DNA of 64,000 nucleotides from assembly GCA_973895155.1 (NCBI GenBank), contig OZ316897.1, positions 7,492,470-7,556,469 of the forward strand. Reading direction: 5' to 3'. A program made the position numbers and the translations under genes. The first letter of the stretch is position 1, and each line of letters begins with the position of its first letter. Of the stretch, positions 16,515-37,855 are shown in pieces. The notes beneath the pieces were generated by a model. The model worked only from the letters and a program-made list of their open reading frames with translations, was not told the DNA's origin and did not search any database. Source of the stretch: Marsupella aquatica. Its lineage: Eukaryota > Plantae > Marchantiophyta.

Positions 16515-18465
16515 TCATGTGTGGCCAGTTCTATTTCTGATAGTCTGGAGTGTCTGGTCCAAGGTATTCAAAGCCCATGACCTTTCTTCTGGCAAATCAT
16601 TAAAATTTAGTTGTTGATGTACATAGGCTGTCAACCCCATAGTGGCATGAGAACTACTTTCACATTCAAGAGAAAGCAGCAAATGCATTTTGAACTTGTC
16701 CTCCTCCGATAAGACTCCAATCTCATTAGTTTCATATGCAAAATCACGGATATCACGAAGACTCTGCACCCAAAAAAAAGAATTTGGTGAATTGGAAATT
16801 AATGAAAAGAATATGCAACCAAATAAAATACATTTTGCTTCACTTACCTCATCGTCTAAATCTTTAACACCATGTTCAAAGTTTCCATGATCATCATTAT
16901 GATTCCAATAATCAGTGCCAATAGTCTCGATAATATCATCTGCATCTTGAATATCAACTTGACCTTCTTCAGGATATGGTGGAGGTAAAACTATTTTAGA
17001 TTCTCTCTCTCTTGCTTGAAAAGCAAGTTGAGGAATGTGTGATGGCCTGTTCACACCTCGTTCTCGCACCGCTCTCACTGTATGGGCATTCCATGTTAGA
17101 ATGATATCATTTACAGCATTCTGAATGAATGGAAAAAGTACAGTAACAATGGAGTATCTATGCAAGGGATTATCCATTTGCAAAAATCCTTCCTCGTATG
17201 ATAGAGTACGAAATAAGTCCTTATAATGACCCAATCCTTGTTTCTTCAAGAATCCCCAAAATGCTTCGATCCTCTGTAAAAATCACAATGATTGTAAAAA
17301 ATTAGTATGTTCCTTGAAATCCTTTTTTCTTTTATAAGTTAAAGCCACAAAAACCCCGTGGCAGAGGGGAAACAACCAGGCCATCAAAAAGCCAGCTAAA
17401 CAACATGACCCCTGGGAGGGCGGGCAGAAAGCATTAACAACGTACATAGACAACAAATCAGCATCGCGGCCAATGCAACATTGGGCCCCCATAAGTCCCA
17501 TCTAGGCAAAAAATTAGTATGTTAATAAACATATCAAGCAAATAATTTTGATAACATGTAGTTGAGTTTAAGTACTACCTGATTATGAACTGAAGAACCT
17601 TTGCGAAAACAATGAGTATTTGGTCTTGCCCTTTCAAGATTATTTTGGACCAAAATATGCTCAGTCGCATAATCAGAACGAATTAATAAAGGATGACCAA
17701 ATCTTTGAACCGCATTTTTATACCCTTCATAAATAGTCCGAGCTTTCTTATTTAATGCAACATGCATATACATAACATAATCTGTAGCTCCATCGATAGC
17801 TCCATGAATTCTAATTCCATAATTTGCTAATTTGTCATATGTTGCACAAGAAATTAAACAAAATTAGTACATAATTTCATGATCATGAACAAACTATCTG
17901 AATCATATATAGTCAAAAAATGATTGATTCAATCTAAATAAAAGGATATAAATACTTGAATTTTACTCACAGTCCATATGCCAAATATGCATTGCTTCGG
18001 TGACATCGTAAACCCGACGTATTAGACATCCGCGTGCTCTTGATGCAAGTAATCCTCGAACTAAAACATCCAAGGCATCACGTACAAGCGTTCTTGGAAC
18101 TTTGTATCCAGCTCTTTGTAATCATGCCTTTATCATTCTTATTCCCCAATCTTTTGCATATCCCAATATGGGAATAAACTCTAGAATCAATTGCCGAACC
18201 TCCTCAAGCGTATATGTTGGATACATTTTCTCTCCATTATTAAATACTTTCAACCATCGCCATAAGGTAATTCAATCTATTCCAAGTGCTAATGCACATT
18301 CCTTCATAGTGTAACCGATGTGAAGTGCTGCCATCACATCTTCACACATTGAATTGATGTTTGTTGCATCCATATATTTCCCAAATATTCTCCAAAACTC
18401 CAATGAACTAAATACTTTATTTTGCCAGTGTATAATTCCACCTTTTTTAGAACAATTAGAGAACT
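16515..18465 (-). pseudogene. IS3/IS481-like (IS3EU-type) DDE integrase-core transposase, multi-exon, disrupted
   Basis: Spliced reconstruction: HTH (ECALALGID*ITLWRWL), WGIRMIKA*LQRAGYKVPRTLVRDAL, RRVYDVTEAMHIWHMD|SYDKLANYGIRIHGAIDGATDY...LIRSDYATEH...GSSVHNQ|RIEAFWGFL...LTWNAHTVR. Putative DDE residues are in WHMD, RSD and RIE. Introns at ~17842-17970 (acceptor AG mutated to AA) and ~17274-17579. Two in-frame TGA stops. Confidence 0.8.
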
Positions 18466-18992
18466 CTGTCAGAAAAACAAAGGTCACAAGACAAGAAAAC
18501 AAGGCTAGTTAGAAAATGTACACTAAGTTGCCATTGCACATACAATAAAGTAGGAATATTTTTAGCAAAAAATACCCTGGATTTACAAAGGGATTTGAAA
18601 ACTATGGAGGGCTCTTTGGTATATTCAATGCCCCAATTTAAGCTCTTGAGAGCATCTATTACAAAAATAAGCAAAGATACAAATGGGCAAACAAAATCAA
18701 TATATAACATTAAAAATTATGCTCATTATCATGACTATGAATCATGTTTATGCATTTTCATTTGAAAATGTGTAGGCACTACCTAGCTTCTCATTAATTG
18801 CAATCCCAACTATGTATACCGGTTCTATAGGGGAACATCTGTACGAGGTGGCGTGCATATCTTTTCCACGAAGAAAGAAAATATCCCCATCTAATATTGG
18901 AATCTTTATTCCATACTCAATAACAACTAGATGTCCACCTCGTTCCTCCATTGAGGGATTTGATGCCATGAACATAGTGTATTTACTACAAT

Positions 18993-21900
18993 AACAAGAA
19001 GCCTTAAAGGGTGAGTAACAAGCCCAAACTCTAAGCACTCTCGTAAAAAAATTGTAGAAACAAAGAAAATGGCAAAAAAGTGGCCAAAAATACTACCTGT
19101 TTTTTGACAAAATTATAAAACAAACTGAAAGTATTAAAATGACACACTTTTTTCACCATCTCCTAATTACAAAATGATCTCAACTTACTTTTGATAAAAT
19201 TACTACCTATAATTTTACTATGCCATTTTAGCAATTTTTACCAAAACATGATTTGTATTTTTAACAAATGATCAAATTACCTCCATAATTTATTAGACTT
19301 GGGAAATTTTCAAATTCATAAAATATGATCTCTTTTTGACTCTCCAACATGCGCCCCTTCACTCTTTGAGGAAGACTTTTCAATGGAAGATGATATCTCC
19401 ACAAATTCACCACCTACGCTTCCAGATGTACCCGTTCTGATCCAAATCAGATCACTCAATGGCTCCTCTTTTACTCTCAACCTGGCTCTCAACATGCCTG
19501 AGTTTGATTTGTTAGGCAACATCTGAATTTCACAAACATATTGACCCAACTGGGCTCCCCCAACCTCTTCTTGGGGACCTCTTCCAAATTCTTATTCTTC
19601 CCCTTCAAGTTAATTTCTTGATATTGATTGGCTTCCAATCTCAGCCAAATGATGCAAGTGTGCCCGGGTGACCTTCTTGTGATGATCCTTTCCTTGCCGG
19701 AATTATTTGCAGCCTCAGTAGGTCTTCTTGTGTCCCCGCTTGTGTCAGCGCTCTTACACCTTCCTGGAATTTGAGAGATGTCAGACGACCATATTCACTC
19801 TCTCCCCTTGGTGCTTGTTGCAACGCTTGACCTTTCCAAAATGCACAACAATCTGGTTTTGAGACAGGACTTAGTGTTTTTAGAAACTTGTTACAATCGG
19901 TCTTCATGAATTCATGAGTCCGCTTTCTCAACTGTCCACTATCTTGAAGACCCTTGAGTCGGACACCCAAATTAACACTAGTCTCAACCACATGGGATAG
20001 AACTTAACGCCCGGGGAGGCTAGTGCTCTCAAATGAGTGAGAAGAACTTAATGTAGACAAAACACACAAAAGAGCAAAAACCCTTTAACTTGAAACAAAT
20101 GAAATAACATGTTTTCATGAATAGAGGACGCCTATTTGAACTTAATTGGTCCTTTGTCTAATTTAAATGAATAAGAAATGCTTAAATCATTTTTCAATAA
20201 TTAAGCCAATCCTTTCATGACATAGATGAACAAGTCAAGGAAAAAGTTGAAAAAATTATATTTCCAAAAGTTTTTTATGACACAACACTTTATTAATTAG
20301 TCTTCTTGGCTACTAGGTGGTATCCTAGTCCTTTGACTTTTTGGCTTGTTGGGCAACTTAGGGCTTCTTTGGGCCTTTTCCTTTCCCCATACCTCCCTTT
20401 ACTAGATTGCTCAATTATTAATCTCACAATATTGTTTGGACTACGCAATCCAGTTTACTTGGAGATATAAATCATTTTTAGGTTTGCATTCCCACGTTTC
20501 ATGAGGATAAACATTGGCATTAAAAACCCATATGTTTTTGCCCACCAGTAAAAACCCATATGTTTTTGCCCACCAGTAAAAACCCATATGTTTTTGCCCA
20601 CCAAGATACGTACTTCCATGACTCATGATTGGAGAGTTTGTCTTGTTGACCTACTGTTTCCATATGCTTTTTGGAATATTGGCATTTGGAGCACTTTTTG
20701 CTTTTATTTCACCATATTTTTTGCATTTCTTGAGATTGAGTGGTTTGTCTTTATCCCCTTTTCTTTCACTTTTGAAGTCTTTCTTTTTGGCTATTCTGGA
20801 GATTCTCTCCCTAAGATACCTTATTCTCTTTCATGAATTCATGAAGGGGCTACCACCTGGGAAACTGAGAAACCAAAAGCTTCATGAATTCATGAACCCC
20901 AAAACTGGTTGTGACAAAATACAAAGGGCAAAGACTCTGTTGCAGGCTCAATGACCTACAAAGGGCTAGGGTAGCCAATTGGCTATGGCAAAGGAGGCTG
21001 CGGCCTGGAGAGGGCTATTGCCCCTCACTTAAGCTCAAGTCGCATCAAGGTGCTGTCATCAGCTGCCGATTGAGGTCAGGCCTAATTTATGGTCTGGGAA
21101 CGACTGCTAATCTCTGCTGTCGCCTTCAAAATCCTGAAGCTGAAATTTTGAATTCCTGGTTTGATGTTGATGCTTTGATTGCTGGATTTCACCTGAGTGT
21201 TGGACTTTGATTTCTCAGATTTGGTTATTGAATGAGCTTCTACTGTGATTGACTGCTGCTTGAATTAGCTGTGGTAGACTCTGATTAAATGAGACAGATT
21301 CCAATTAGGGGAGATAGCCACAAAGGATCAGGGATAATTTGTGAAAAATTGAGCTTGAGAGCTAGATCTCAATCGAGCAGACCTAAGGATTGAAGGGGGA
21401 GCGAGTGGAGGATGGGAGAGGGAGCAAGGGAGATTGGAATGGGATTGATAAGGATTGGAAGGGGATTGGAAGGGGATTGGAAGGGGATTGGAAGGGGGGC
21501 CATTTAGGGATTGGAGGAGGGTGGACAATCGACCGTCAGGGGAACGATCAACCATCAGAGGGGGATGGAGCACCGGAGGAGGGCAGTCGAGCATCAAGGG
21601 GATGATCAAACATTGGAGGGGGAGCGGTAAAAGATCGGGGGGGGGAGGGTTTAGGATTGGGGAAGGGTTTCACTAATCAGGGACCGGGGGAGGGCCGATC
21701 GGGAATCAAGATTGATCCAGGGAGGATTAAGGGTTGACCAGGCCTGGTCTGGGTCAAAAATGAGTCCAAGGTGGATGGATTGGGAGCAGAAGCAAAGAGA
21801 ACTATCGAGCTTGGGGGAACTAACTGGAGGGAGCTAGGAGGATCAGGTAGCTTCTTTCAGGTGAGAACCCGGCTTCATGATTTCATGAAGCCAGGTGGCT

Positions 21901-22398
21901 GCCCAAATCAAACTCGATGTACATTTCAATATTGGTATGGATCAAGAGAGTGGGGAGGACGTGAAGCGCACCAGAGTAGAGGGTGCAACAGAAGATGTAA
22001 CTATTGAGCTAGCTCGGATTGAAGCAAGGATCTTCTAGAAGTGGAGAGGAGGTTAGAGAAGCCTTAGATTAGTTGAGTTGCATTGTATTTAGAGATTTAG
22101 TGGACTTAGATGCACACCTACAATGGATAGTGGCATTCTAATTAAGATTTTGAGTTTGCACAAACTCAGATCAAAGACCGTAAATTTTATGTTTGTAATT
22201 AAGTATGGATTTGTTGTTTTTGGTAATTGTGAAAATGATGTTGAAAATATCCCAAGATTTTCATTGAAAGAATTATAATAGCAAAGTTCACAAAACATGT
22301 TTCATTTTTATATGTTTTTTTAAAGCACTTTTGGAAAAATCATGAAAATCTTGAAAAAGGAATTCGGGCCTTGGACTCATCCCTTAAGGCTCCATGTT
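18993..22398. mobile_element. non-autonomous TIR DNA transposon, 3406 bp, 4-bp TSD CAAT
   Basis: Imperfect ~39-bp TIRs: AACAAGAAGCCTTAAAGGGTGAGT... and (reverse complement) AACATGGAGCCTTAAGGGATGAGT.... CAAT at 18989-18992 and 22399-22402. Excision restores the TET reading frame. No recognisable transposase inside. Confidence 0.8.
20522..20603. repeat. ~28-bp tandem repeat x3 (AAAAACCCATATGTTTTTGCCCACCAGT)
   Basis: Read directly; the unit has an AAAAAC..ATAT..GTTTTT hairpin core. Confidence 0.85.
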
Positions 22399-24412
22399 CA
22401 ATCATGATCATTATGAACTATATTACAGTAGTTCTTTGTAAGAAATAGAGGATATGCTGGTACAACATGTTTCACAACATCGGGCCTGGAAAAGTATTGA
22501 CGTAATTCTTTGCTTAGATCCATGAAAGGATCTTTGCAATGCAAAAATTCCCTCACTACCGGCCAAAAATAATCACAAAATAATAGGAAAATAATTTCAA
22601 ATAAGATTCGATGGGAGCATTGCTCATGAATTAACTCCAATTGCAATGCACTAATCGGAGTTGTATCAACAATCTTTAACTTATCCCTGTAGTAACTCAC
22701 AAAATGTGCTCCTTTTCCTTCTCTCCAATTCACAAGTGGCCCCACAACTCGCATTGTTTCAATCAATGCTGATCTCGAATCAGCTCTACGAACAGTCCAT
22801 TTGTGATTGTAGGCATCAATTATTGAATGCCTTAGAAATGGTCGATCGCCCTCTGGAACAACTCCTTTCATTCTCCCCCCTATTATTTCATTGGTAGACC
22901 TATCTTTCCAGATTTCAATAGATGACAAGGGATCCATAACATAAAAGTTACTTGGTATCACCTTCCATACAATATGTCGTTCTGTTTTGGGTGGGCTAAA
23001 TCCTCTCTCAATCAAGAAAGCATTTTTATGTTTCACAAGAAACTTAGGGCTTCTCTTCGCAAATGTCTTTACTGGGATTTTATGTTCTTCAAATTTTTCA
23101 AAATGATCTGCCTTCCAATTTATATATAAAATTGGATCTTTACAAAACTTTCGGACCCTGGTGGCAATCTCATTCCCAAGCGAAGATAGATTGTACCGGA
23201 AAGTGATCAAGTGGACTATTGTTTTCCACTGATTGGCAGTAAAATACTCAGACCAACGACTGGTTTTCCCCAAGAAGTGAAAACCAGAATAAAATTTTGA
23301 TAACTCTTCCTTCATTTTCCCACCGGAAAAGATGTGCACACCATATTCAAAGAGTAACCAATCACCGAGCAACCATTTCAGTAAAAACTGAATATGTAAT
23401 TTTCCCAACTGAGATGTAAGAGTGATGAGCTCACAGAAATAAATAGCAGCCTTAGGAAGAGGTTGGATTTTGATGATCATTAAATTGAATCTGCACAAAT
23501 AAGATTATTGATCAACATAAAGTGATAAAGAACTTTTACTAATTTAGTATAGTTTACTAGTTAATCAATATTTTGCTTGACATCTTGGACCATAGTGATT
23601 TCAAATCGAATTTGAAGCATATCAACGCCAGGCACTGAGGATTCCAACAAAAATAATCTGAAAGTTTCACCCCCCCCGGAATATCAATTCTTCTTGATTT
23701 TACTCACAAAACTATGGTCTCCAAAATATAGCAATATAATGATGATAATTAATATCTTATAATAGATTGTATATTATTGGCAACAAGTTAAGATTCTTAC
23801 CATTTCATCAGATTTGGGAGAAGTTTGCCTTTTCTTTCCCCTTCTTTCATTTACTTTTGCATCATTGTTACTCAATTTTAAGCCTTTCATCGAATCTGCA
23901 ATGAATGACAATCTATCATGAATATCAACTTTTTCATATAATTGTTCAAACAAAAAATAACACTAACCATTCGCATATCAATCACAGGTACTTATTTGAC
24001 ACATAGAATTACTTTCTATAGCCTAATCTTTAGGTATGTCTATTTCTTGACATAATTATTTTGGATATTGTTTGTATTAACGTATTCCAAACTCCATCAA
24101 CAAATACAAAATTGAAGTATGCAAATTGCATGCATGCAACAATAGATGAGGCAAAAAGAGAAATGATCACCTCGTCACCACAAATTAGCCAGTTTTCCAA
24201 ATCTAAAGTTGTCTTCAAAATTGATATCTCTGCACTTTCCAAAAAATATATCAAGCTTAAGGTCCCATTGGCCATAATACAAAATCTAGTGGATCCAAGT
24301 TACTATGAGTCCTCCAAAATATTCTCAATAAAATTTAAAATTTTTCACTCTTTTGTCCTTTCCTAATTTGATGCCCTATGGTGTTTTAGTCAAAGAGTCT
24401 ATTGGATAAACT

Positions 24413-25099
24413 TTAGAGCCAAGAAATATGATCATGAACAGGGGTCTGCAAAGTGGGATCAATGGGATGGAGATGACAATAGAAGAACCATCTGTCAACT
24501 CCATGGGCACTATGATCATATATCTTTCGATCACAAGCATATCCTTCTGCCTGACATTCCTTCAAACAGTAAAAATGCCACATTGTGGGGCATCGAATGC
24601 AATGGACAGTATCTGTCCAATTGAGGTCATCATGTTCACCACATGCCTTGCATGTATGTAACGGGCAGATAGGGGTGTGTGATGGCAGACACGCACCGCA
24701 AAAAAACCTTACACAAAATCTATCTGAACATTTTCGAACATATTGTGGAGAGTCAAGAGAACCCTCCAAATTCCCCAACTTTCCACATTGGGCACACTTT
24801 GCATGTTTATGTATGCAGTCTTTGCACTTCCACTTCCCATGTTGGCCAGAAGGTGGGGGAAGGCCGACCCCTGGACAATTATTCTCTGCTGCATGCAGAG
24901 ATTGTGCATTGAGATGAAAGTGCTTCAAGCATGGTCCGTCACAAATGACTAACTCTCCACCATCATCACAAATGGCACAACAATGGGCTGCTTTTTGGTA
25001 GATTTGTTCGCGTGAAAACTTCAAAACATGTGGTCCAAACACAGCTGAATGTCTCACCTCGCCCTTATCTTTTCTACATGGTTGTTTAGGACGAGCCAT
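24413..25099 (-). CDS. EDM2-like tandem PHD/Cys-His finger protein, 228 aa, intact
   Basis: CAICDDGGELVICDGPCLKHFH...WKCKDC...CAQCGKLG...VRKCSDRFC...CPLHTCKAC...CIRCPTMWHFYCL...YCHLHPIDPTLQTPVHDHI is collinear with the PHD region of Arabidopsis EDM2 as recalled (CAICDNGG...CPLHKC...CRRCPKSYH...YCxxHEIDxxLxTPVRDH). A splice acceptor TGCAG sits 2 nt before the ATG. Confidence 0.85.
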   Translation of the reverse strand: MARPKQPCRKDKGEVRHSAVFGPHVLKFSREQIYQKAAHCCAICDDGGELVICDGPCLKHFHLNAQSLHAAENNCPGVGLPPPSGQHGKWKCKDCIHKHAKCAQCGKLGNLEGSLDSPQYVRKCSDRFCVRFFCGACLPSHTPICPLHTCKACGEHDDLNWTDTVHCIRCPTMWHFYCLKECQAEGYACDRKIYDHSAHGVDRWFFYCHLHPIDPTLQTPVHDHISWL

Positions 25100-25219
25100 G
25101 CCTGCACATCCATAAACAAAATGAATTGTTAGAAATCATAAAAAGTTGGGATAAACTCAGAACTAACAAACCATCAAAAATACACAATAATACTACTATC
25201 ACTAGTACATTTTTGCTCA

Positions 25220-25625
25220 TTTTCCGATGCTCCCGCTGAAACATGAAACAGGCGTCCGATAGCCAGAGTTACGCAAACTTTTGTTCACAAAAATATCGGA
25301 ACTTGCGATCCCCACAGCTTCGGAAACACAGTATCCGATTTCCAAAACATCGGACATAATTTGCGATACTCCTAATATCGGAACATATCCGATGTCTTGA
25401 CTATCGGACCCCTCTTCTAAAAATTGTTACTAAATTTCCGATCCCTGAAGTATCGCATTTGATGTCCGATTGAGTAAATTACGGAAATATTGCGATCGAA
25501 AATGTATTGCTTAGTGCTTCCGATAGGTTGGGTATCGGAAATGTTTTCCGAAGTAGTGTGTATCACAAATAAGTCCGATGCTACAAGAATCGGAAATGGA
25601 GTCCGAAAGGGTTTATATCGGATAT
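25220..25625. repeat. CACTA left subterminal motif cluster (ATCGGA/TCCGAT, both orientations)
   Basis: Many TCCGA/TCGGA copies; mirrored at 34365-34860. Confidence 0.75.
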
Positions 25626-25885
25626 ATGTAGTTCGAGGTCAAGATTTGAACAAGGATGGGCTTCCGTTGTTTTAAGCATGGGAAATGGTATCAGGAATAA
25701 ATGGACGTGACTCAAATGCATATATTACTTAGGGATTGCAATTTGGATTGTGTCAAGGGACTATATACAGTTGTATCCAAAATTATATCCAACCAATGAA
25801 TCTTTGGGCATGTGTGAAATGACATGACAAAATGTATATGATATCCATGAAGATAAAACATATAGGGGTTTTACCTAGGTCGCAT

Positions 25886-28800
25886 CTATTGTAATGAGGG
25901 GTCCAAATCCTCTACTACAACTACACTTGGCTTGTCTTGAACAATGGATCGTGAGCGAGGGATGTAAGGCATAACAATGGACCACTCTGGGTCATTCGGA
26001 TAAGGAAGATAGAAAGATTGCTCCAAATGATGGGGAAATGCAAATGGATCTGAGGTCCTCCAATTGGAACTAATGACACTAGTTGCACTGGTCTTCAATC
26101 GTGTGAACCCACATGCATCTTCTTCACAGGTCCGATTATGGCCAACAAGATTCATCCGAAACCATTTGCACTTGAACACCACCTCCTCCAAGGTTGTATG
26201 GGCATGATAATTTACGATAAGAATCTCCTCTATCTTCCCATAGTGGGCCACAATTGAACGTATTGGATTCCGGTCAAAAGTGCTACTTTGTGACTCTTGG
26301 GTGAACCACCCCATCACCCCACAATCTTGTGTTGCTGCTCTCTTCATATCAAGATGTTGGATTCGAAAATGCCTCCCCTTTGACCACATGGCTGTTCGAG
26401 TCGTGACCATGAGTAATGGACCATGAACAAGGGTGCGAATGTCATTGGTGACCTTCGGAAAGTGCAAAACACTCTCACCCTGACCCAACAAGGCATCAAT
26501 CTCTGTCAACTTCTCCTTCATATATGGGAGAAACTTGGGGAAGAGGCGTGGCCGACGACTATTACTCTTCTCCTCCTCATAAAATGCAGTCCACTCCCCT
26601 GCAATCTCTGGTGAGTTATACAACATGAATGTGGTGAGTTGCAGACGTTCAGCAGAGCCTAGTAGTCGTTCTCCCTTTGCTCCAGTGAGTCTATCCTCTT
26701 CATAATCTACCTCTCGTGCTGACTCATCTATCCAACCCCTTGGAGCATTTGGATCAAGTGTAGCCACAATGTTCGTACAATAGAACATACTCTCTGCTCC
26801 AAGGTGACGTTCGGCAATGCTACCTTCCACCCTAGCACGGTTTGATACATTTGATTTCATGACTCCCATGAATCGCTCTACCCAATACATCCAACGACAA
26901 TGTACTGGGCCTGCAATGGCTACTTCACGCACTAGATGTACAAGAAAATGAACTTGACCATCAAAGAAGGAAGGAGGGAGTGCTCGCTCCAACTTGCACA
27001 CAACCTCCACTCCAAATACCTCAATGGCAGCAATCTCTCCCTCGTTGACCTCCTTTTGACAAACCCATCTCAACAATCTACCCAATGACCAAAGTGCATC
27101 CTGAAGATCCTCGCTGCCCAATCCAATAATAGCAACTGGAATAACATGCTGCAATAGACGATGATAATCGTGGGTCTTCAAGAAAGCTGGACATTTTGGA
27201 GAGTCATCTCCACCAAATGCCTTGCGAAGATTGGCACCATACCCTGTAGGAAACCGCATTGACCCTATCCGCTTGCGAAACTCTATTCGCTCACTCCTTG
27301 TGAAAACCCATGGGGGATGGATAGTAAGGGGAGGGTCAGGGTCCATAGATGGCCAAAAACCATGAAGGCCATGCATCCCCATCTTCTCACAACTCTCCCT
27401 CCAATTGTTGTTTTTCTCTCCATATAGATGGCGGATCAATGACCTCCCAACATTCCCCTCAATATGCATAGGGTCCAATAGATGATTTATCGGCATGTGT
27501 TCCCAATATGGAAGTTGTGCCAATGCAGACAAACGGGTCATGCCACATCTAGCCAAGGGTAATGGGTCATCTGGATCAGTCACCCTCTCCCATACCTCCT
27601 TCCAATATATTGGGTCCTTCGGTAAAGGTTGAGGTCTTGTGTCTGGCTGGCCCTCATCCGTGTCATACAAAAATGGATCATACCTCCAGTCATGCCCCTC
27701 AGGAAGATACTTTGTGTGACCAATGTAAACTATCTTCCGCAGGGTGGTAGACTTTGGGCGTGCCACTCCCTCCAAGTCTGGTCCACAAGTTGGGCAAGCA
27801 CGATATCCAGAAGCTTGCAAGCCAGAAATATATCCAAACCCTTCACAAACAATGGTCACAAATTAAAACCCATTAAGTTTTGAAACCAAACCAAAGGGAA
27901 AAAAAATAAACAGAACGATATATATATATGGGTAGCTGCACAAGCCATACTTAATTTATAAAGAGTTGCGTACCTGGAAGATCATGCATGGTCCACATAA
28001 GAATGGCTTTGAGCTGAAACTCACGGGGTAAGCCCCCTGTATGCACTCGACCATCATAGCAATCCACTCCCCCCCAAAGTTTCTATAGCTCCTCAATCAA
28101 CGGTTGCAAGTATACATCAATCTTCTTCACTTGCTTAGGGCCAGGAATAATCATAGATAGGAGCAAATGACCCTTCTTCATGGCCATCCATGGTGGGATG
28201 TTGTAGTTAGTGAGGACTACTGGCCATACAGAGTATGGTTTGGCCTTGCCGGCCAGTGCAAATGGGCTAATGCCGTCTGATGCCAAACCAAGGCGAACAT
28301 GACGAGGGTCAGTCTTGAACTCACCCCAACGCTCTTCCACAAATCTGTTTGCAGGAGAGTCAACCATCATGCGCATGGTTGGATCCTGAGTAGTGTCTGA
28401 ACGGTGTTGGGAATGCCATACCATATACTTAGCCAACTCTGCACATCGAAACTGGTGACGCAAACGAGGAATAAGGGGAAAGTACCTCATAACCTTTTGA
28501 GGTACTCTTCCTGTCAACATATCCTCACGATATCTTGGCGCGTTGCACACAGGACATGTAAGAGCATTTGAGTGCTCCTTCCTGAACAAAACACAATCAT
28601 TCACACAAGCATGTATGACCTCATACTTGAGGCCTATGGACTTCAACACTTTCTTTGCCTCTTTCCATGATGCTGGCAAGTTATTCCCCTCTGGTAACAT
28701 ACGATCATGCAATGTCCTGAAAATATCATCAAGAAGCAAGTTGCTTGCTCCATGTCTTTGCTGCAAGTTCAGTAATAACATGATTGCTGAAAGACGAGAT

Positions 28801-29136
28801 AATCTAGACCCCTCAAAAAGACGAGTCCGTGCATGCTCTTGAGCCTCCTCCCACTGGTGCAAGTGTCGATTCCGTGAAGGAGTATGCCTATGAGGAGGAG
28901 GTAAGTCAATGTCCTCCCAGTCACCTGGGTCATGATCACCCCGGGGATCACCCTCATCTGCATCCATGAATTGGTGCATCAACTCATCCATAGCCCGGTC
29001 CTCATCCACTCTTTCTTGGGTAGCATTAGGTAGTTCATGTGGAATGTCCATATCCTCAAAAGGTTGACCCCCTTGCCTACCATCCATGGCCTGAAGGAGA
29101 TGTTGTCGCACAGCTCGTGATAATACCTCAATATCT
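25886..29136 (-). pseudogene. CACTA TnpD/Tnp2 transposase (Transposase_21 + DUF4218 + DUF4216-type regions) with one premature stop
   Basis: IHACVNDCVLF, TCPVCNAPRY, YFPLIPRL, VRLGLASDGISPF, SVWPVVLTNYNIPPW, IDVYLQPLIEEL*KLW, WTMHDLP|G, LDPMHIEGNV, KTHDYH, GPVHCRWMYWVER, VVFKCKWF. Intron ~27846-27973; TAG at 28083-28085. Confidence 0.92.
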
Positions 29137-29325
29137 GGCTGAACAAATGCATTCTATCATACACAAAAGAAAACAATGAGAATGATATAAGTCCAGGTCT
29201 CTCAACCAACAATTGAGACATCCATATATGAATGAGTCAAAAGACTCCATAGCTCTTGAAACCAATTAGAGAATGACTCAAGTAATATTTTTATAAAAGT
29301 GAACATATACACATGTTTGTATGTG

Positions 29326-30261
29326 CTATGAAGGACGACACCGTATGGCCATCTTAGGCGCGTTCCAATCATAGTCACAAAAGAGTTCCTCACCAGCCCT
29401 AATAGTCCTAATGGCTACAGTCATAACATGGTCATCCATATGCTTCACATAGTAAGGTGGTGGCGGTGCCCCAAAAATCTGAACCCACTCTACATTTGGT
29501 TGAAGTCCTCGTCCTCTCCCTTTGGTACTATTGATATACCCAGCGATGTTATCACATCACACAGGATCACCATCAATCATCCTACAATGCCAAGGCCTCT
29601 TGAGGACCTCATCCGGATCGGAATCCATTTGCAATGCATACACTCCCCATGATGGTTGTTGCCGTAAAATAATGTTCCAATTCTTGGCAGTGTATATAGG
29701 GCCAATATAAGGAAATAAGTGTTCCCCATCATAACCTCTTCGCCATGGCTTTGGATGGACCACAATGTCCTCCAAAGCAAATAACCCAAATCCTACATCA
29801 ACACCAAGGGAAGATGACTGCACTATCCAATGACGGCCCCATATCTCTATAGGGGCATTAGTGGGTATGCCTTGAGGGATTTTGAATATCTCAGACGAGA
29901 AGTCCTTCACAAGAGGCAATGCCTTTCCAGAGAGATATGACAATCCCAACCTACCCTCCACTACCACATAACCCTCACCTGGCTTCATCATAGGCGGACC
30001 TACCAAGTTTGGGTCTTGAGACTCACGAGTGCCCAATGGTTCATAATGTCTCCTATGCCTATGGGAGCGTGGGCCGGTGCGTAAAACCCTAGATGGAGGT
30101 ACCTTCAGGTCACCTTGCTCAATGTCCTCCACCCTTGCTACAGGTACACTCCCACCCTCACCTTTGGGGCATGGGGCAGGAGGAGGCGGTGTAGATGTTG
30201 ATGCAAGCATCCGTCTTGCACTAGCCAAGAATGTGTCTAGCCATAGCTCTTTAGAGATCAA
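29326..30261 (-). pseudogene. SET-domain protein carried inside the CACTA element (one in-frame TGA at 29557-29559)
   Basis: Read-through translation: QSSSLGVDVGFGLFALEDI...PYIGPIY...MIDGDPV*CDNIAGYINSTKG...QPNVEW...VMTVAIRTIRAGEELFCDYDW. This shows the SET motifs GxGLFA, YxG, (R)YINxS and GEELxxDY. Confidence 0.8.
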
Positions 30262-31413
30262 TGGAGGAGGGGCCCATCAATGTGAAAATTAATCACATGT
30301 CAAAAATCTTTCCCACTCATATTAAGTACCCTAAATACAATATGTCAAGATTGGAACCTAGTTTACACTAAGCGAATAATTAAAAATAATGACTGTGCAT
30401 CTTACCTAAATGATATCCGCACTGAACAATGCCTACTAGGATCTTGGCCTTAGAATATATCCGAAGACAATATCCGAAATGTCTGCACAATTAAAGGAAT
30501 ACCATCAGAATTTATCTATACATATGTCCCCATAGAATCATATCCACTATATATTGTGGCCATCAATGAAAAAAATTCAGCCAAATATATACTTAAAGTG
30601 CTCACCTCCAAATGATAAAGGGAGTATATCATACCTTTCGGATGCACGGCCTATCGCGATGCATAATGCATTGCAAAAATGGACCTACAAAAATACAAAC
30701 AAAGAGAACGACCCAACCCTCCGCAAAAAAATACTGCACAATACACGCACATGAGGTTAACTTTGTTTGGCCCCCAAAATTAAATCCACATACAAGGTGG
30801 ATAAATTTGTCAAAACTTTTAATGTGAGTGGGTCAATGATCATACCGTTCAACCCCAAAAGTATGTTGTTGTAAGGGGGACGTTACCGCACCTATAACCG
30901 GATTTTATTCAAGAACCCCACCGCCCAAACAAAATCCGGCTACTCAACCAGGCCTACAATTACAATGCAAGTTTTCACATCAACTAAACTTACATTTCCT
31001 TACCACATCCTCAGCCCCCCCCATTGACTAACTTATTATAAATCCATCCTTAAAGGCATAAAAAATAATGGACAAGCTAAGTCCGATCATATTGGAAGAG
31101 GGGTCCGATACTTTAAGCATCGCTATTTCCGATCCCATTTTCGATAGTTCAAGTATCGGATGTTCCAATTCTTAAAAAGTCGGATGGAGGGCACAATAGG
31201 GTTTGGTACTTTTCCCGACTAAAGTACGAATGTCTTTGTATCGGGCTTGGTTTCGGATGCAACTTGGGAGGAGCTGCTGAGTGAACACAAAGTGGAGGAG
31301 CACGCATTGGAGGTCGAGGCTATGGAGGGGAATGGCACGGCTGGGGGGGAGGAGACGGAGCAGCCAGGGTGGGTGGAGATGGAGCAGGGCCGTCACAGCA
31401 GATCTCGGACATT

Positions 31414-34110
31414 ATGGCAGAGATTTTCAAGAGGCAAGCAGGCCTGTCTGCTGAAGCTGCGGCCATAGCAGCTCAATTGACCCAGGGCCTGATTGACGAA
31501 TCCAGGCAATCTGCCATAAGTGAAGCAAAGAAGGCTTTCATGGAGAGGCTAGAGAAAGGAAAGGAGAAAAAAAGAAAGAGGAAGGAGGAGAGGAAAGGCA
31601 GGCCAGTGGAGGCCCTCTCACCACAAGAAAGAGAGAAGAGGCTTAGAAAGGAGGCTCGAGCTGCAGAGAGGGCAAGGATTGAGGAAGAGAGGCTACGAGC
31701 AGAGGAAAGGGCCAAACGGCCAAAATTGTTCATTAATAAGGGAGGAGCTTCGATGACAAAGAGCTACAATTTGTTCAGAAGTCAGCTAGGGCAGGTGTTG
31801 AGGGCAAATTTCAGCCCCTTAGATTACTGGGGGAAGAAGAAAGAAGAGGAGAAATTTCAAGCAAGGGAGCAAGTGAAGGAGCGATTCTGTATTGGCTGCT
31901 TCCTGGATGATCGATGGCTGAATAAGAAGATCTCACGTTCACTTGCAGATAGACGTAATAATGTGAGAGAAAAGATGAGGAAGTACCTGGCAGATTGTAA
32001 GGAGGAGGCAGAGGTGATCAGGCAGAGAGATCCCCCGGATGAGATACCAGGTGATGCCTGGTCTGCTTGGATTGATGCTGAGCTACAGGTTCGTGCTTGG
32101 CAAGCGAGACGTCACTGGCAGGCTGAGCTCGATGAGGCAGAGAAGAGGGTCCTTTCAAGACAGACTGTTGACATCCCCCTCCTGCAGCAAAACTTAATGG
32201 AATGGGAGGCCAAATTAGCACTGCTTGGAGACCCTCCACTTTACATTCAAAATGCAATTGAGAGGGTGGAGAAGAGACCTACAGTTACTCACCGAATGGG
32301 GCAGGGTGGAGCGCATCGTCTCAAAGCAGAGTTTGTAAGTCCTCTGCTCCCCTCCTCCTTGCGCGCCTCCTTGCTGAATTTTTACCTTGAAATTGGGTCC
32401 TCCCTCTCCCTGATCACCTCAGGCACAACCTTGGCTATGCCTGCATAAGTCCTCCCAGACCTCCCCTCTTATCCCTGTGCGTTTGTTATCGAGCCTGTAT
32501 CGCAAGTTTTGATGTGTCCTTATTTTTTTCTGTTTCCGATTCTATTCCGATTGCTGAAGAGTCGGAAATGGAGTGAGACTCTCTCTTATGGGTTTTGGAC
32601 GCAAGGCTTCCGATTATGGTCCGATTACCTGAGAATCGGACCCTGCATCGGACCTTAGGTTTTGGGGTTTAGGGTGGAGGGGTCCGATTAGGGAAGCATC
32701 GGAAAAATTCAAAATTTTGAATATTTGACTGTTTTAGGCCACGCCGGGGGGTTTTTTTTTTTTAAGGAGTGCCGGGCTTAGGTTGTCGTTGCTTTTTGCG
32801 ATAGTTAGGCCACAATAATAAGGGAGTATTTTATATAGGTAGAGTGGGTAGTGATACCCATGAGTTGAAAGGGATGTGGGGGTGTTAGGGAATTTTTCTA
32901 AGTAATGTGTGGGGCTAGGTAGGGATTATTATTCATTAAGTAATGTGGGGGATTTGGTAGGGATTAACTTTTAAAATAATGTATTTCAAGTAATGGGGGG
33001 GTTCAATTTTATTCTCATTTGCCGGGGAGGGGGGTTAATTATTATCTTGAGTATGGTGCAGGAGCAAGAGCATGGACGCCCAATCTTGCCACCTGAGAGA
33101 GAGTTGGCTAAGAAATTTGGAACGCGGGCTCTGAAACTTCACATGCAGGACGAGTTGGGGTCGGTAAGTATATGCACAATTGAAAACCATATTTCTAACC
33201 TTTGATGCAACATGGTTATAATCACTCCCTTGTAGGTCATTTTCAACACTAACACTTGGGTTCATGGTTGCTTACATGTATGTAGGAGTCAAATGAGGAG
33301 TCAGAGGGTTTGGACTCAGCCGAGGAGGGTTCGGGGGCCTCAGATTCAGAGTCTGAGGCTGAGGAGGGGAGTGTGGCACCCACCCCTGTTCGCTTGATTG
33401 GCGGCACATCCCGAGGGACTCGAGGTAGTCATTCTAGACGGAGGACTGATGGTGATGTAGGTGGCCGTAGAGCAGCAGGAGGTAGTGGGGGTGCTACAGC
33501 TGCTAGAGGTGGTGTTGGGACAAGTGGTAGTGGGCGCCGGGGCGGTTTTGATCGATCTGCAGGTGCTGGTGGGCGGGGTAGTACTGGGGCCCATAGTGGT
33601 TCTCACAGGCCCGGGTCTGGTGGGGGGGTTGGTAGTGGGCCCCATGGTGGTTCTCGCCGCCATTCAGGGGTTGTTGGCGGGAATGGTTCTCGCCATTCAG
33701 GGGCTAGTGGTGGAGGGGCTAGTGGGGGTGGGAGCACTGCTCGTGGTCATTCAGGGGCCAACAGGGTGAGTGGGACTGCAGTTGGTGGCATTGGTGATAG
33801 GACTCCATCTCACCAGTCAGGGGCTAGTGGAGGTGCAGGGTCTCACCACTCTGCAGCCCAAGGGGGTAGTGGAAGTGCATCATTTCATACTTGCTCCGAT
33901 GCTGGGGGTGTTACAGTGCCTTCTCATGACTTAGAAGGTGATGTTGGTGACGTTGGTACCGCGATAGCTCCAAGCACCACAGCTGCAACTGCATCTCATG
34001 CTGTCATTGATAGGGTCCTAGGGTTAGTGCCAGATGCCACTACCCGACCAGAGAGTTATCGCCCTCGTGCCAAGAAGAGGAAGGGACGACATGCACCAAC
34101 ATATGGATAG
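31414..34110 (+). CDS. CACTA TnpA-like accessory protein; exons 31414-32334, 33062-33163, 33286-34110
   Basis: Canonical GT-AG junctions that keep frame. Coiled-coil region, DPPDEIPGDAWSAWID and THRMGQGG (Transposase_24/PTTA-like), then a Gly/Ser-rich tail. Divergent from TnpD. The true start may be ATG 31322, shifted by an indel in a G run. Confidence 0.65.
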
Positions 34111-34364
34111 GCCAGGTAGCTTAGCATAGGACCATTTGTAGGTAGGCCACGATACCATGCAGGTTGAGATGGATTATACACCTGTACATGTAAAGGTTGT
34201 ACTTTCCATGCTAGAGGAGGCCATCCTCTTTTGTATATATAATGGCAGGGGTTTCCCCCTTTTGAGTCTCACTACCATTCTTGCTACCCATGCTCACTTC
34301 CATGCATCCCAACATTGTAACCCCCACACCCCCAAAATTAATAATCAGAAATTTTACCCCTTCA

Positions 34365-34860
34365 ATTATCCGATACTCCTCCGATCTTAAAAATATCCGA
34401 ATGTCCGATTCTCCCAAACTCGGAATTTGCCATCCCCAGAGAATCGATCTTTTCGATACCCTTGGTTACGGTCTTTCCGATACTTCTAGTAACGGTATTT
34501 TTGATCTTTATAACAACGGTATGTTCGATACTTTTATTTACGGTCTTTGCGTAACCTTTTGATACGCAATATGCGATATTCAAAGTTACCCAAAGTCCGA
34601 TTCTTTACGTATCGGAAGTGGATCGGAAGTGTATCGGCTCCCCTCTTCCATTTCCGATTTGCAGAACATCGGACGGCTGATTTTCCATTATTTTTGGGTA
34701 CGCAAAGTGCGTTAAGTTTTGTATCGCAAAGTCCGATTATCTTCCGATTGTCGTTATTCGATGGGTTGAGAGTCGGAATTTGCGATACGTTTAGAGTCGG
34801 ATGAGATGTTTTTCTTGGAAAAATTTTACAAAGGGATCCGAAGGTGTCCATGTCGGAAAT
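34365..34860. repeat. CACTA right subterminal motif cluster (TCCGAT/ATCGGA)
   Basis: Dense TCCGAT, ATCGGA and TTCGATAC copies. Confidence 0.75.
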
Positions 34861-34944
34861 TGGCCTCATAATGTACTAGTGTATTCAATGAGCTATTCAA
34901 GATTCATGTACAAATTAGTTGCATACTTCAATCTACATAACAAG

Positions 34945-37855
34945 TCCAAGTACATGTTGTTCTCTTAGCCATGCAGGTCCCTCACAAGATGCTGGTATGA
35001 TAAGAGTCGTGGCTGCCAAATGTCCCTTCTTTGAACTACTCATAAACAAAATTAATATTCACTAAGGAAAGCAGGGTTTGAGAGATGGAACCAGAGATGG
35101 CAAAATTTCTAGAGCCACATTCCCTTACCAGAATGGGACCAAACTTTGCCTGCACATACCCCAGGTAGAAGACAACGTGCTGGTGAAGTAAGAGCACCAA
35201 CAAAGCTTTGGTTGAGAAATGAAAAATGGGAGCCTTTGTGGGGTACTCCTGCCTCCTAAGCAACCTTTGACTTCTCTCCCTTGCCACTATTCAAACCAGC
35301 TCCGACTTGCTAGATCTGCAACCAAGTCCAAGTGCATGTTTTCCTCTTAGCCAGGTCCCTAACAAGATGGTGGTTCATAAGAGTCGTAACTGTCAAATCT
35401 CCCTACTTTGAAGTACTCAGAAATCAATCGTTCAATAAGGGAAGCAATGTTGAAGAGATGGGAGAAGGGAGCGTGGAATTTCTGGAGCCACATTCCCTGG
35501 GTGGAATGGGACCAAACTCGGCCAGCACGTACCTCAAGTAGTGGAAAATGTCCTGGTAAAGTTACAATACGAACGGCAATTTCAGTGACAAATGAAAAAT
35601 CGGATGCTCCGAGGCGGTCCTCCTGCCTCCCAAGCCACCTTCGAATCTTCTCCTTTGCCACTACTTTGATCAGCTCGTACTTGCTAGACCTGAAAATGAG
35701 TCCAACTACATTGTGTTCTCTCAGCCACGTCCCTAACAAGATGATGGTATCACAGGAGTCGTAGCTGTTGAACATCACTGCTTTGAAGTACTCAGAAATC
35801 AATCGTTCAATAAGGGAAGCAATGTTGAAGAGATGGAAGCAGGGAGCGTGGAATTTCTGGAGCCACATTCCCTGGGCGGAATGGGACCAAACTCGGCCAG
35901 CACGTACCTCAAGTAGTGGAAAATGTCCTGGTAAAGTTACAATATGAACGGCGATTTCAGTGAGAAATGAAAAATCGGATGCTCCAAGGCGGTCCTCCTG
36001 CCTCCCAAGCCACCTTCGAATCTTCTCCTTTGCCACTACTTTGATCAGCTCGTACTTGCTAGACCTGAATACGAGTCCAACTACATTGTGTTCTCTCAGC
36101 CACGTTCCTAACAAGATGATGGTATCACAGGAGTCGTAGCTGTTGAACATCATTGCTTTGAAGTACCCAGAAATCAATCGTTCAATAAGGGAAGCAATGT
36201 TGAAGAGATGGAAACAGGGAGCGTGGAATTTCTGGAGCCACATTCCCTAGGCGGAATGGGACCAAACTCGGCCAGCACGTACCTCAAGTAGTGGAAAATG
36301 TCTTGGTAAAGTTACAATATGAACGGCGATTTCAGTGACAAATGAAAAATCGGATGCTCCAAGGCGGTCCTCCTGCCTCCCAAGCCACCTTCGAATCTTC
36401 TCCTTTGCCACTACTTTGATCAGCTCGTACTTGCTAGACCTGAAAACGAGTCCAACTACATTGTGTTCTCTCAGCCACGTTCCTAACAAGATGATGGTAT
36501 CACAGGAGTCGTAGCTGTTGAACATCACTGCTTTGAAGTACTCAGAAATCAATCGTTCAATAAGGGAAGCAATGTTGAAGAGATGGAAACAGGGAGCGTG
36601 GAATTTCTGGAGCCACATTCCCTGGGCGGAATGGGACCAAACTCGGCCAGCACGTACCTCAAGTAGTAGACAATGTCCTGGTAAAGTTACAGCATAAATG
36701 GAGATTTCAGTGCGAAATGAAAAATTGGATTCTCCAAGGTGGTCCTCCTACCTCCCAAGCCACCTTCGAATCCTCTCCTTTGCCACTACTTCGATCAGCT
36801 CGTACTTGCTAGACCTGCAAACGAGTCCAACTACATTGTGTTCTCTTAGCCATGTCCCTAACAAGATGATGGTATCACAGGAGTCGTAGCTGTTGAACAT
36901 CACTGCTTTGAAGTACTCAGAAATCAATCGTTCAATAAGGGAAGCAATGTTAAAGAGATGGAAACAGGGAGCGTGGAATTTCTAGAGCCACATTCCCTAG
37001 GCAGAATAGGACCAAACTCAGCCAGCACGTACCTCAAGTAGTAGACAATGTCCTGGTAAAGTTACAGCATGAACGGAGGTTTGAGTGAGAAATGAAAAAT
37101 CGGATGCTCCGAGGCGGTCCTCCTGCCTCCCAGCCACCTTCGAACCCTCTCCTTTGCCACTACTTCCATCAGCTCATACTTGCTAGACCTGCAAACGAGT
37201 CCAACTACATTGTGTTCTCTCAACCATGTCCCTAACAAGATGATAGTATCACAGGAGTCGTAGCTGTTGAACATCACTACTTTGAAGTACTCAGAAATCA
37301 ATCGTTCAATAAGGGAAGTAACATTTAAGAGATGGAAGCAGGGAGCATGGAATTTCTGGAGCCACATTCCCTGGGCAGAATGGGACCAAACTCGGCCAGC
37401 ACGTACCTCAAGTAGTAGACAATGTCCTGGTAAAGTTACAGCATGAACGGAGGTTTCACTGAGAAATGAAAAATCGGATGCTCCAAGGCGGTCCTCCTGC
37501 CTCCCAAGCCACCTTCGAATCTTCTCCTTTGCCACTACTTCGATCAGCTCGTACTTGTTAGACCTGCAAACAAGTCCAACTACATTGTGTTCTCTCAACC
37601 ACGTCCCTAACAAGATGATAGTATCACAGGAGTCGTAGCTGTTGAACATCACTGCTTTGAAGTACTCAGAAATCAATCGTTCAGTAAGGGAAGTAACATT
37701 TAAGAGATGGAAGCAGGGAGCGTGGAATTTCTGGAGCCACATTCCTTGGGTGGAATGGGACCAAACTCGGCCAGCAAGTACCTCAAGTAGTGGACAATGT
37801 CCTGGTAAAGTTACAATATGAACGGCGATTTCAGTGAGAAATGAAAAATCGGATG
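34945..37855. repeat. 375-bp tandem array, left part (~8 units, first ones degenerate)
   Basis: Marker CCTTCGAA recurs with its TCGAA at 35641, 36016, 36391, 36766, 37140 and 37515 (period 375/374). The ORF track repeats a 125-aa unit. Confidence 0.95.

Follow-up and report, generated by a model that had tools for sequence, protein, structure and literature searches.

Two open reading frames (ORFs) on the minus strand of a 64,000-nucleotide stretch of the genome of the liverwort Marsupella aquatica (contig OZ316897.1, positions 7,492,470 to 7,556,469; hereafter the window) raise the question of whether they are parts of one interrupted gene, what that gene encoded and what divided it. Both were located where an initial annotation had placed them (22398-23498, ending in HNDHD, and 18748-19038), and the same annotation had proposed that they belong to a hidden TET/JBP dioxygenase gene, cut right after its HxD iron-binding motif by an element with terminal inverted repeats (TIRs). 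Taken as a whole, the best explanation, which we consider highly probable, is that an intronless, transposon-associated TET/JBP-type gene was split by a non-autonomous TIR element.

On the minus strand, the 5' frame ends in CAT AAT GAT CAT GAT TGA, where AT from the final Asp codon and TG from the stop together spell ATTG. A second ATTG lies at 18992-18989, with TAGTAAATAC directly after it. When the insert (18993-22398) and one ATTG are taken out of the sequence, HNDHD-CSKYTMF is read in frame and the distal iron-binding His falls 50 residues past the first. The TGA stop (22400-22398) is composed of two bases of the duplication and the first base of the insert, and is therefore a product of the insertion. 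The HxDxD motif stands directly before the insert and the 4-bp duplication is present on both sides, in agreement with the cut proposed after HxD; the proposed excision does restore the frame, but the join given for it was two bases off, the exact pieces being 23498-22401 and 18990-18751. Translation of the 5' piece likely starts at the ATG at 23480, giving 360 codons; this ATG lies 13 codons ahead of a conserved YF motif and, in the family alignment described below, near the start of several relatives. Before the insertion, the locus would have held one intronless minus-strand gene of ~440 codons, running from this ATG to the TAA at 18750-18748; the 3.4-kb element entered at the codon after HxDxD, duplicating 4 bp.

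The insert is bounded by imperfect TIRs of ~39 bp, in which 31 of 40 columns match when aligned from base 1 of each end (local score 31; the best score among 3,000 random 80-mer pairs drawn from the window was 26). The target-site duplication is exact, with CAAT on either flank of the insert on the plus strand, and no Pfam match was found in the ORFs of the insert. The 3.4-kb insert is a non-autonomous cut-and-paste (class II TIR) element. A 4-bp duplication is compatible with Sola, Ginger1 or Chapaev-type elements (cf. PMC6839031); identity with the Sola-like element located elsewhere in the window (37.9-50.0 kb) was considered and rejected, as the TIRs of the two differ. If the 3.4 kb were instead an intron or an assembly artefact, open frames on both sides would be expected as well, and nothing else was found in its favor. 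The 5' junction has no GT, by which an intron is ruled out, and the frame runs immediately into an in-frame TGA; inverted repeats at both ends, the 4-bp direct duplication and the continuous DNA of a relative (locus L001, below) likewise stand against either origin, to which we assign almost no probability.

Further repeats were observed within the insert. It carries four palindromic TTCATGAATTCATGAA-like cores, a 33-nt inverted pair (19902-19934 and 21858-21890, 82% complementary), a perfect tandem repeat of three 28-bp units (20521-20603) and an array of the 11-bp unit GGGGATTGGAA (21426-21497). The 33-nt pair together with the TTCATGAATTCATGAA-like cores suggests that a second element is nested inside the insert; the insert is possibly a composite.

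Uninterrupted relatives were used to establish the state of the site in the absence of the insert. Separate searches were run with the 5' and the 3' piece. A word-indexed search with the 5' piece returned a single protein, P0001 (479 aa, Logan assembly), which is the closest intact relative; word-indexed searches in general, with the 5' piece or the family alignment, returned just one or two family members. The 5' piece aligned to P0001 residues 45-399 (54% identity, E 2e-145) and residues 2-79 of the 3' piece to P0001 residues 401-478 (60% identity, E 2e-35); since the one ends at residue 399 and residue 2 of the other corresponds to residue 401, residue 1 of the 3' piece fills position 400. 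At the P0001 locus (L001) the DNA is uninterrupted across the insertion site. In all, 13 uninterrupted relatives matched both pieces. Nine of them align up to the break, with the pieces abutting and zero residues lost or gained (besides 399/401 in P0001, junction positions were, e.g., 129/131, 53/55, 41/43, 75/77 and 366/368); the other four, the most distant ones, did not align as far as the break. The context of the junction is similar among relatives, as in HCDND-RSKYTMF of P0002. The initial annotation had named paralogues that differ across the junction as evidence that would speak against it; the nine relatives that reach the break speak in its favor, all being collinear and abutting to the residue. 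On a Joint Genome Institute (JGI) metagenome contig, from a different organism, a further family member (L004:1047-2450) is likewise broken: one in-frame stop divides it into ORFs of 249 and 218 aa.

Apart from the insertion, no stop or frameshift was found over the region matching P0001 residues 45-478. Of 27 positions conserved across 80% or more of the family, the window copy retains 25, and the two changes (F to Y and G to A) are conservative; the insertion is thus its sole visible lesion, and the claim that the catalytic domain holds no other was upheld. Because the insertion made the TGA stop, the 5' product would lack the third iron ligand and the C-terminal ~80 residues of the catalytic core, so that, as judged from the sequence, the window copy would be catalytically dead and neither piece could be an enzyme.

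The identity of the gene was addressed by structure, with the natural intact relative P0001 as the folding proxy. An AlphaFold model of P0001 was built on family alignment A1 (31 rows) and had a predicted local distance difference test score (pLDDT) of 76.8 and a predicted template modeling score (pTM) of 0.76. The model adopts a double-stranded beta-helix fold, and TET/JBP proteins are the solved structures closest to it. In a Foldseek search of the PDB it matched CcTet (7e-9), CMD1 (2e-7), NgTET1 (7e-7) and TET2 (1.6e-5), followed by other 2-oxoglutarate (2OG) oxygenases at 5.5e-5 and weaker. On re-scoring with VIA-align, CMD1 gave Z 17.8 (266 residues, 4.0 Å), TET2 16.4, CcTet 14.4 and NgTET1 14.4, with PHD2 (Z 12.4) and AlkB (11.4) as the next classes. 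VIA-align run without Foldseek over 48,161 PDB representatives placed CMD1 (17.3), TET2 (16.1), NgTET1 (14.2) and CcTet (13.2) at ranks 1-4, and the next class, prolyl hydroxylase, at Z 12.0. Alignments to TET/JBP structures spanned 206-269 residues, versus ~180 for other classes. The N-terminal third of P0001 was scarcely covered by structure matches; its residues 50-175 (window ~23450-23000, minus strand) form a helical domain, modeled with confidence, in which the Trp residues W77, W117 and W126 are conserved.

The active-site motif was compared in the same proteins. The core of the family profile, H-a-D-k-D-l-S...ggeF...YGi...dGD...HGt, aligns to LHLDTDDG...GGEFVL...LGI...HGT of CMD1, a stretch which contains the iron ligands His345, Asp347 and His397 (PMC7854593). 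The His and Asp at 22415-22407 and the distal His at 18855-18853 in the window align to these three ligands and correspond to His395, Asp397 and His445 of P0001, and the HxD...H iron triad of TET/JBP dioxygenases is present in the window copy and in the family. The family itself is small: an exhaustive HMMER search of 1.84 billion representatives recovered 27 relatives, all without names and mostly fragments from Logan assemblies. When each member was scanned singly against Pfam, sub-threshold Tet-like matches were obtained in 7 of the 31, five to PF20515 (2OG-FeII_Oxy_6; best E 0.0014) and two to PF12851 (Tet_JBP; best E 0.00029), and these two were the only Pfam families matched by more than one member. 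Of the 30 clusters nearest in an ESM Atlas feature search, 17 belong to the set that is listed together with a cluster carrying Tet_JBP. Membership of another 2OG/Fe(II)-oxygenase class, prolyl-hydroxylase-like or AlkB-like, with the likeness to TET reduced to the shared jelly-roll, would agree with the Z values of 11-12 that PHD2-type and AlkB-type structures also reach and with the sub-threshold standing of Pfam Tet_JBP. We regard it as very unlikely, given that the four TET/JBP representatives outrank all other classes with longer alignments, that the recurrent Pfam matches are Tet-like only and that the motifs align to CMD1. The modeled fold, the active-site motif and the recurrent weak Pfam matches bear out the TET/JBP identity first proposed, and the gene is supported as a member of a TET/JBP-fold dioxygenase family beyond the reach of current sequence models.

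The surroundings of the gene are rich in transposons (Table 1). A co-oriented ORF upstream has NSD-type PHD finger matches, which are weak and under the curated cut-off. A co-oriented remnant of an integrase-type transposase gene (Pfam rva_4) with a helix-turn-helix-like N-terminus begins ~240 bp downstream and has at least three in-frame stops (18274-18272, 18124-18122 and 17965-17963). The CACTA/EnSpm element, inserted 101 bp upstream of the PHD ORF, has Tnp2, DUF4218 and DUF4216 ORFs across two frames and many subterminal GTCCGAT-type repeats. No recognizable neighbor genes were found on the contigs of the relatives (L001-L004, each 2-4 kb). Between the CACTA and Sola-like elements, two minus-strand ORFs (35359-36243 and 37062-37742; 294 and 226 aa) have the same weak TPP_enzyme_M match and may be related copies of a repeat-borne gene.

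Table 1. Coordinates of the interrupted gene, the inserted element and neighboring features in the window, with conserved residues of the relative P0001
Feature	Position	Strand	Details
Inserted non-autonomous TIR element	18993..22398		3,406 bp
TIR, low-coordinate end	18993..19031	plus	begins AACAAGAAGCCTTAAAGGG
TIR, high-coordinate end	22360..22398	minus	begins AACATGGAGCCTTAAGGG
Target-site duplication, copy 1	22399..22402		CAAT on plus strand, ATTG on minus strand
Target-site duplication, copy 2	18989..18992		CAAT on plus strand
5' piece of TET-like gene	22401..23498	minus	366 open codons, C-terminal end HNDHD; 22398..23498 in ORF list
3' piece of TET-like gene	18748..18990	minus	80 codons plus TAA stop (18750-18748); rest of jelly-roll core
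H-N-D-H-D codons	22401..22415	minus	iron-binding His 22415-22413, iron-binding Asp 22409-22407, family-invariant second Asp 22403-22401
Distal iron-binding His codon	18853..18855	minus	within DMHATSY
P0001 Arg271			conserved in 12/12 family sequences
P0001 His395			conserved in 22/24 family sequences
P0001 Asp397			conserved in 22/23 family sequences
P0001 Asp399			conserved in 22/22 family sequences
P0001 His445			conserved in 18/18 family sequences
P0001 Asn465			conserved in 17/20 family sequences
Upstream PHD ORF, co-oriented	24413..25099	minus	228 aa; PF23011 E 3.8e-4, PF23004 E 2.8e-3
Integrase-type transposase remnant (rva_4), co-oriented, downstream	16515..18508	minus	E 1.8e-8 and 6.7e-5
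Complete CACTA/EnSpm element	25200..34881		9.7 kb; CACTAGTACATT termini, 3-bp TAT duplication

These neighbors bear on the state of the gene when the element arrived. The proposal that it was intact until the insertion holds only in the sense that no other lesion is visible, the neighboring transposase gene being already decayed. The gene could by then have been a silent relic of a dead transposon, its lesion-free frame a matter of youth or chance, in which case nothing in use was inactivated. The adjoining integrase-type transposase with its at least three in-frame stops fits such a history, as does the make-up of the region, a pile of nested transposons that includes the CACTA element 101 bp from the PHD ORF and, further on, the Sola-like element. 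In contrast to the decayed transposase gene, the adjoining TET-like frame has stayed open over ~440 codons save for the insertion, and its 25 of 27 conserved residues include all of the iron ligands; a relic is somewhat unlikely on this evidence, though far from negligible.

Several results weigh against the explanation of a split, transposon-associated TET/JBP-type gene. No Pfam family scored above threshold on the 5' piece, the 3' piece or P0001, and the Tet_JBP match anticipated by the initial annotation was absent from all three; the evidence for the family assignment is thus structural and motif-based. That structural evidence comes from P0001, which is 54-60% identical to the window protein. 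Sequence searches of the PDB (phmmer and the family profile) reached CMD1 at just E 0.3-0.5, ranked below chance-level matches to a hexosaminidase and capsid proteins; CMD1 was the sole TET/JBP protein among these weak, non-significant matches. The empty-site comparison was made with relatives from other organisms rather than with an allele of the same species, and no second copy of the 3.4-kb insert was found in the 64-kb window. A TIR pair enclosing the PHD, TET and integrase genes was looked for in the window and not found, so that for this copy a transposon carrier is plausible rather than demonstrated. By sequence, the family also lacks the Arg that TET2, NgTET1 and CMD1 carry 10-15 residues past the distal His. 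A second copy of the TET-like gene was likewise not found in the window.

The missing Arg bears on the co-substrate. Arg1896 of TET2 and Arg289 of NgTET1 bind the C5 carboxylate of 2-oxoglutarate; in CMD1, the aligned Arg410 faces away and vitamin C is used instead (PMC7854593). In the stretch after the distal His (P0001 445-465; minus strand, window 18855-18793), 12 of 19 family sequences have an Arg at +5, Tyr is common at +13 and an Asn (Asn465) is conserved at +20. As no Arg is found 10-15 residues past the distal His, classical 2-oxoglutarate chemistry is not assured, and the family may use another co-substrate.

The known system that matches best in structure is CMD1 from Chlamydomonas reinhardtii (PDB 7CY4-7CY8; PMC7854593), at Z 17.3-17.8 across 254-269 residues. 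It likewise belongs to the green lineage, its H-x-D...GGEF...GI...HGT core aligns to that of the family and its His-His spacing is 52, versus 50 in the family. The iron-binding His residues of NgTET1 are also spaced by 50 (229 to 279). CMD1 differs in that identity is only ~12-13%, in that its Asp350, which reads N4 of 5-methylcytosine from +5 of the first His, is not conserved in the family, where an invariant Asp stands at +4, and in that the family has no Arg at the distance corresponding to Arg410, which in CMD1 is averted from the active site. CMD1 is, moreover, a chromosomal algal gene and not a neighbor of transposons. Human TET2, Naegleria NgTET1 and Coprinopsis CcTet share the fold and the HxD...H triad at ~9-11% identity; unlike them, the family has no Cys-rich domain and no large insert, and it lacks an Arg where TET2 has Arg1896 and NgTET1 has Arg289.

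A second point of comparison is provided by fungi, in which transposon-encoded TET/JBP genes were reportedly described by Iyer et al. in 2014. Fungal TET/JBP genes are carried by KDZ, IS3EU, EnSpm, hAT, Harbinger and Helitron transposons (Kojima 2025, PMC12730594), and GingerRoot integrase-type, IS3EU-like transposons occur in bryophytes and lycophytes (PMC6839031). As in the fungal cases, the TET/JBP gene in the window adjoins a co-oriented DNA-transposase gene in transposon-rich DNA, and by analogy it would have been the cargo of a DNA transposon or at least associated with one; the neighboring integrase-type transposase suggests that the carrier may have been of the IS3EU/GingerRoot kind. 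The role proposed for the fungal enzymes, escape from methylation-based silencing, is likewise proposed here: intact family members would oxidize or otherwise modify 5-methylcytosine and so counter the silencing of their element, perhaps with a co-substrate other than 2-oxoglutarate. The present case differs in its plant host, in a protein that has diverged too far for the Pfam models by which fungal TETs are recognized, in that no ends of a host element were found and in the destruction of the window copy by another transposon. A bolder proposal, and in our estimation quite an unlikely one, is that the family forms a plant-lineage, transposon-associated TET/JBP branch which, like CMD1, does not use 2-oxoglutarate and which shields host transposons from methylation-based silencing by a non-canonical modification or removal of 5-methylcytosine. 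Land plants would then, if this is true, possess an anti-silencing enzyme.

TET/JBP enzymes oxidize methylated bases of DNA. Land plants remove 5-methylcytosine by means of DME/ROS1 glycosylases and, to our knowledge, are taken to lack TET-type oxidases. No report of a TET/JBP gene from a land plant, Physcomitrella and Marchantia included, was found in the literature searched, whose coverage excluded most subscription journals. The window gene belongs to a known kind, transposon-associated TET/JBP genes, of which it is a very divergent example from a host lineage where it was not expected. The dead copy is of value as a clean and datable example, having a single lesion with an exact excision footprint logic, and genes interrupted in this manner will be split or missed by gene finders. 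The absence of the 2-oxoglutarate Arg makes the family a candidate for unusual co-substrate chemistry. Should its intact members prove active, early land plants would have transposons equipped with a DNA-demethylation-type enzyme of their own, a situation comparable to that of some fungal transposons.

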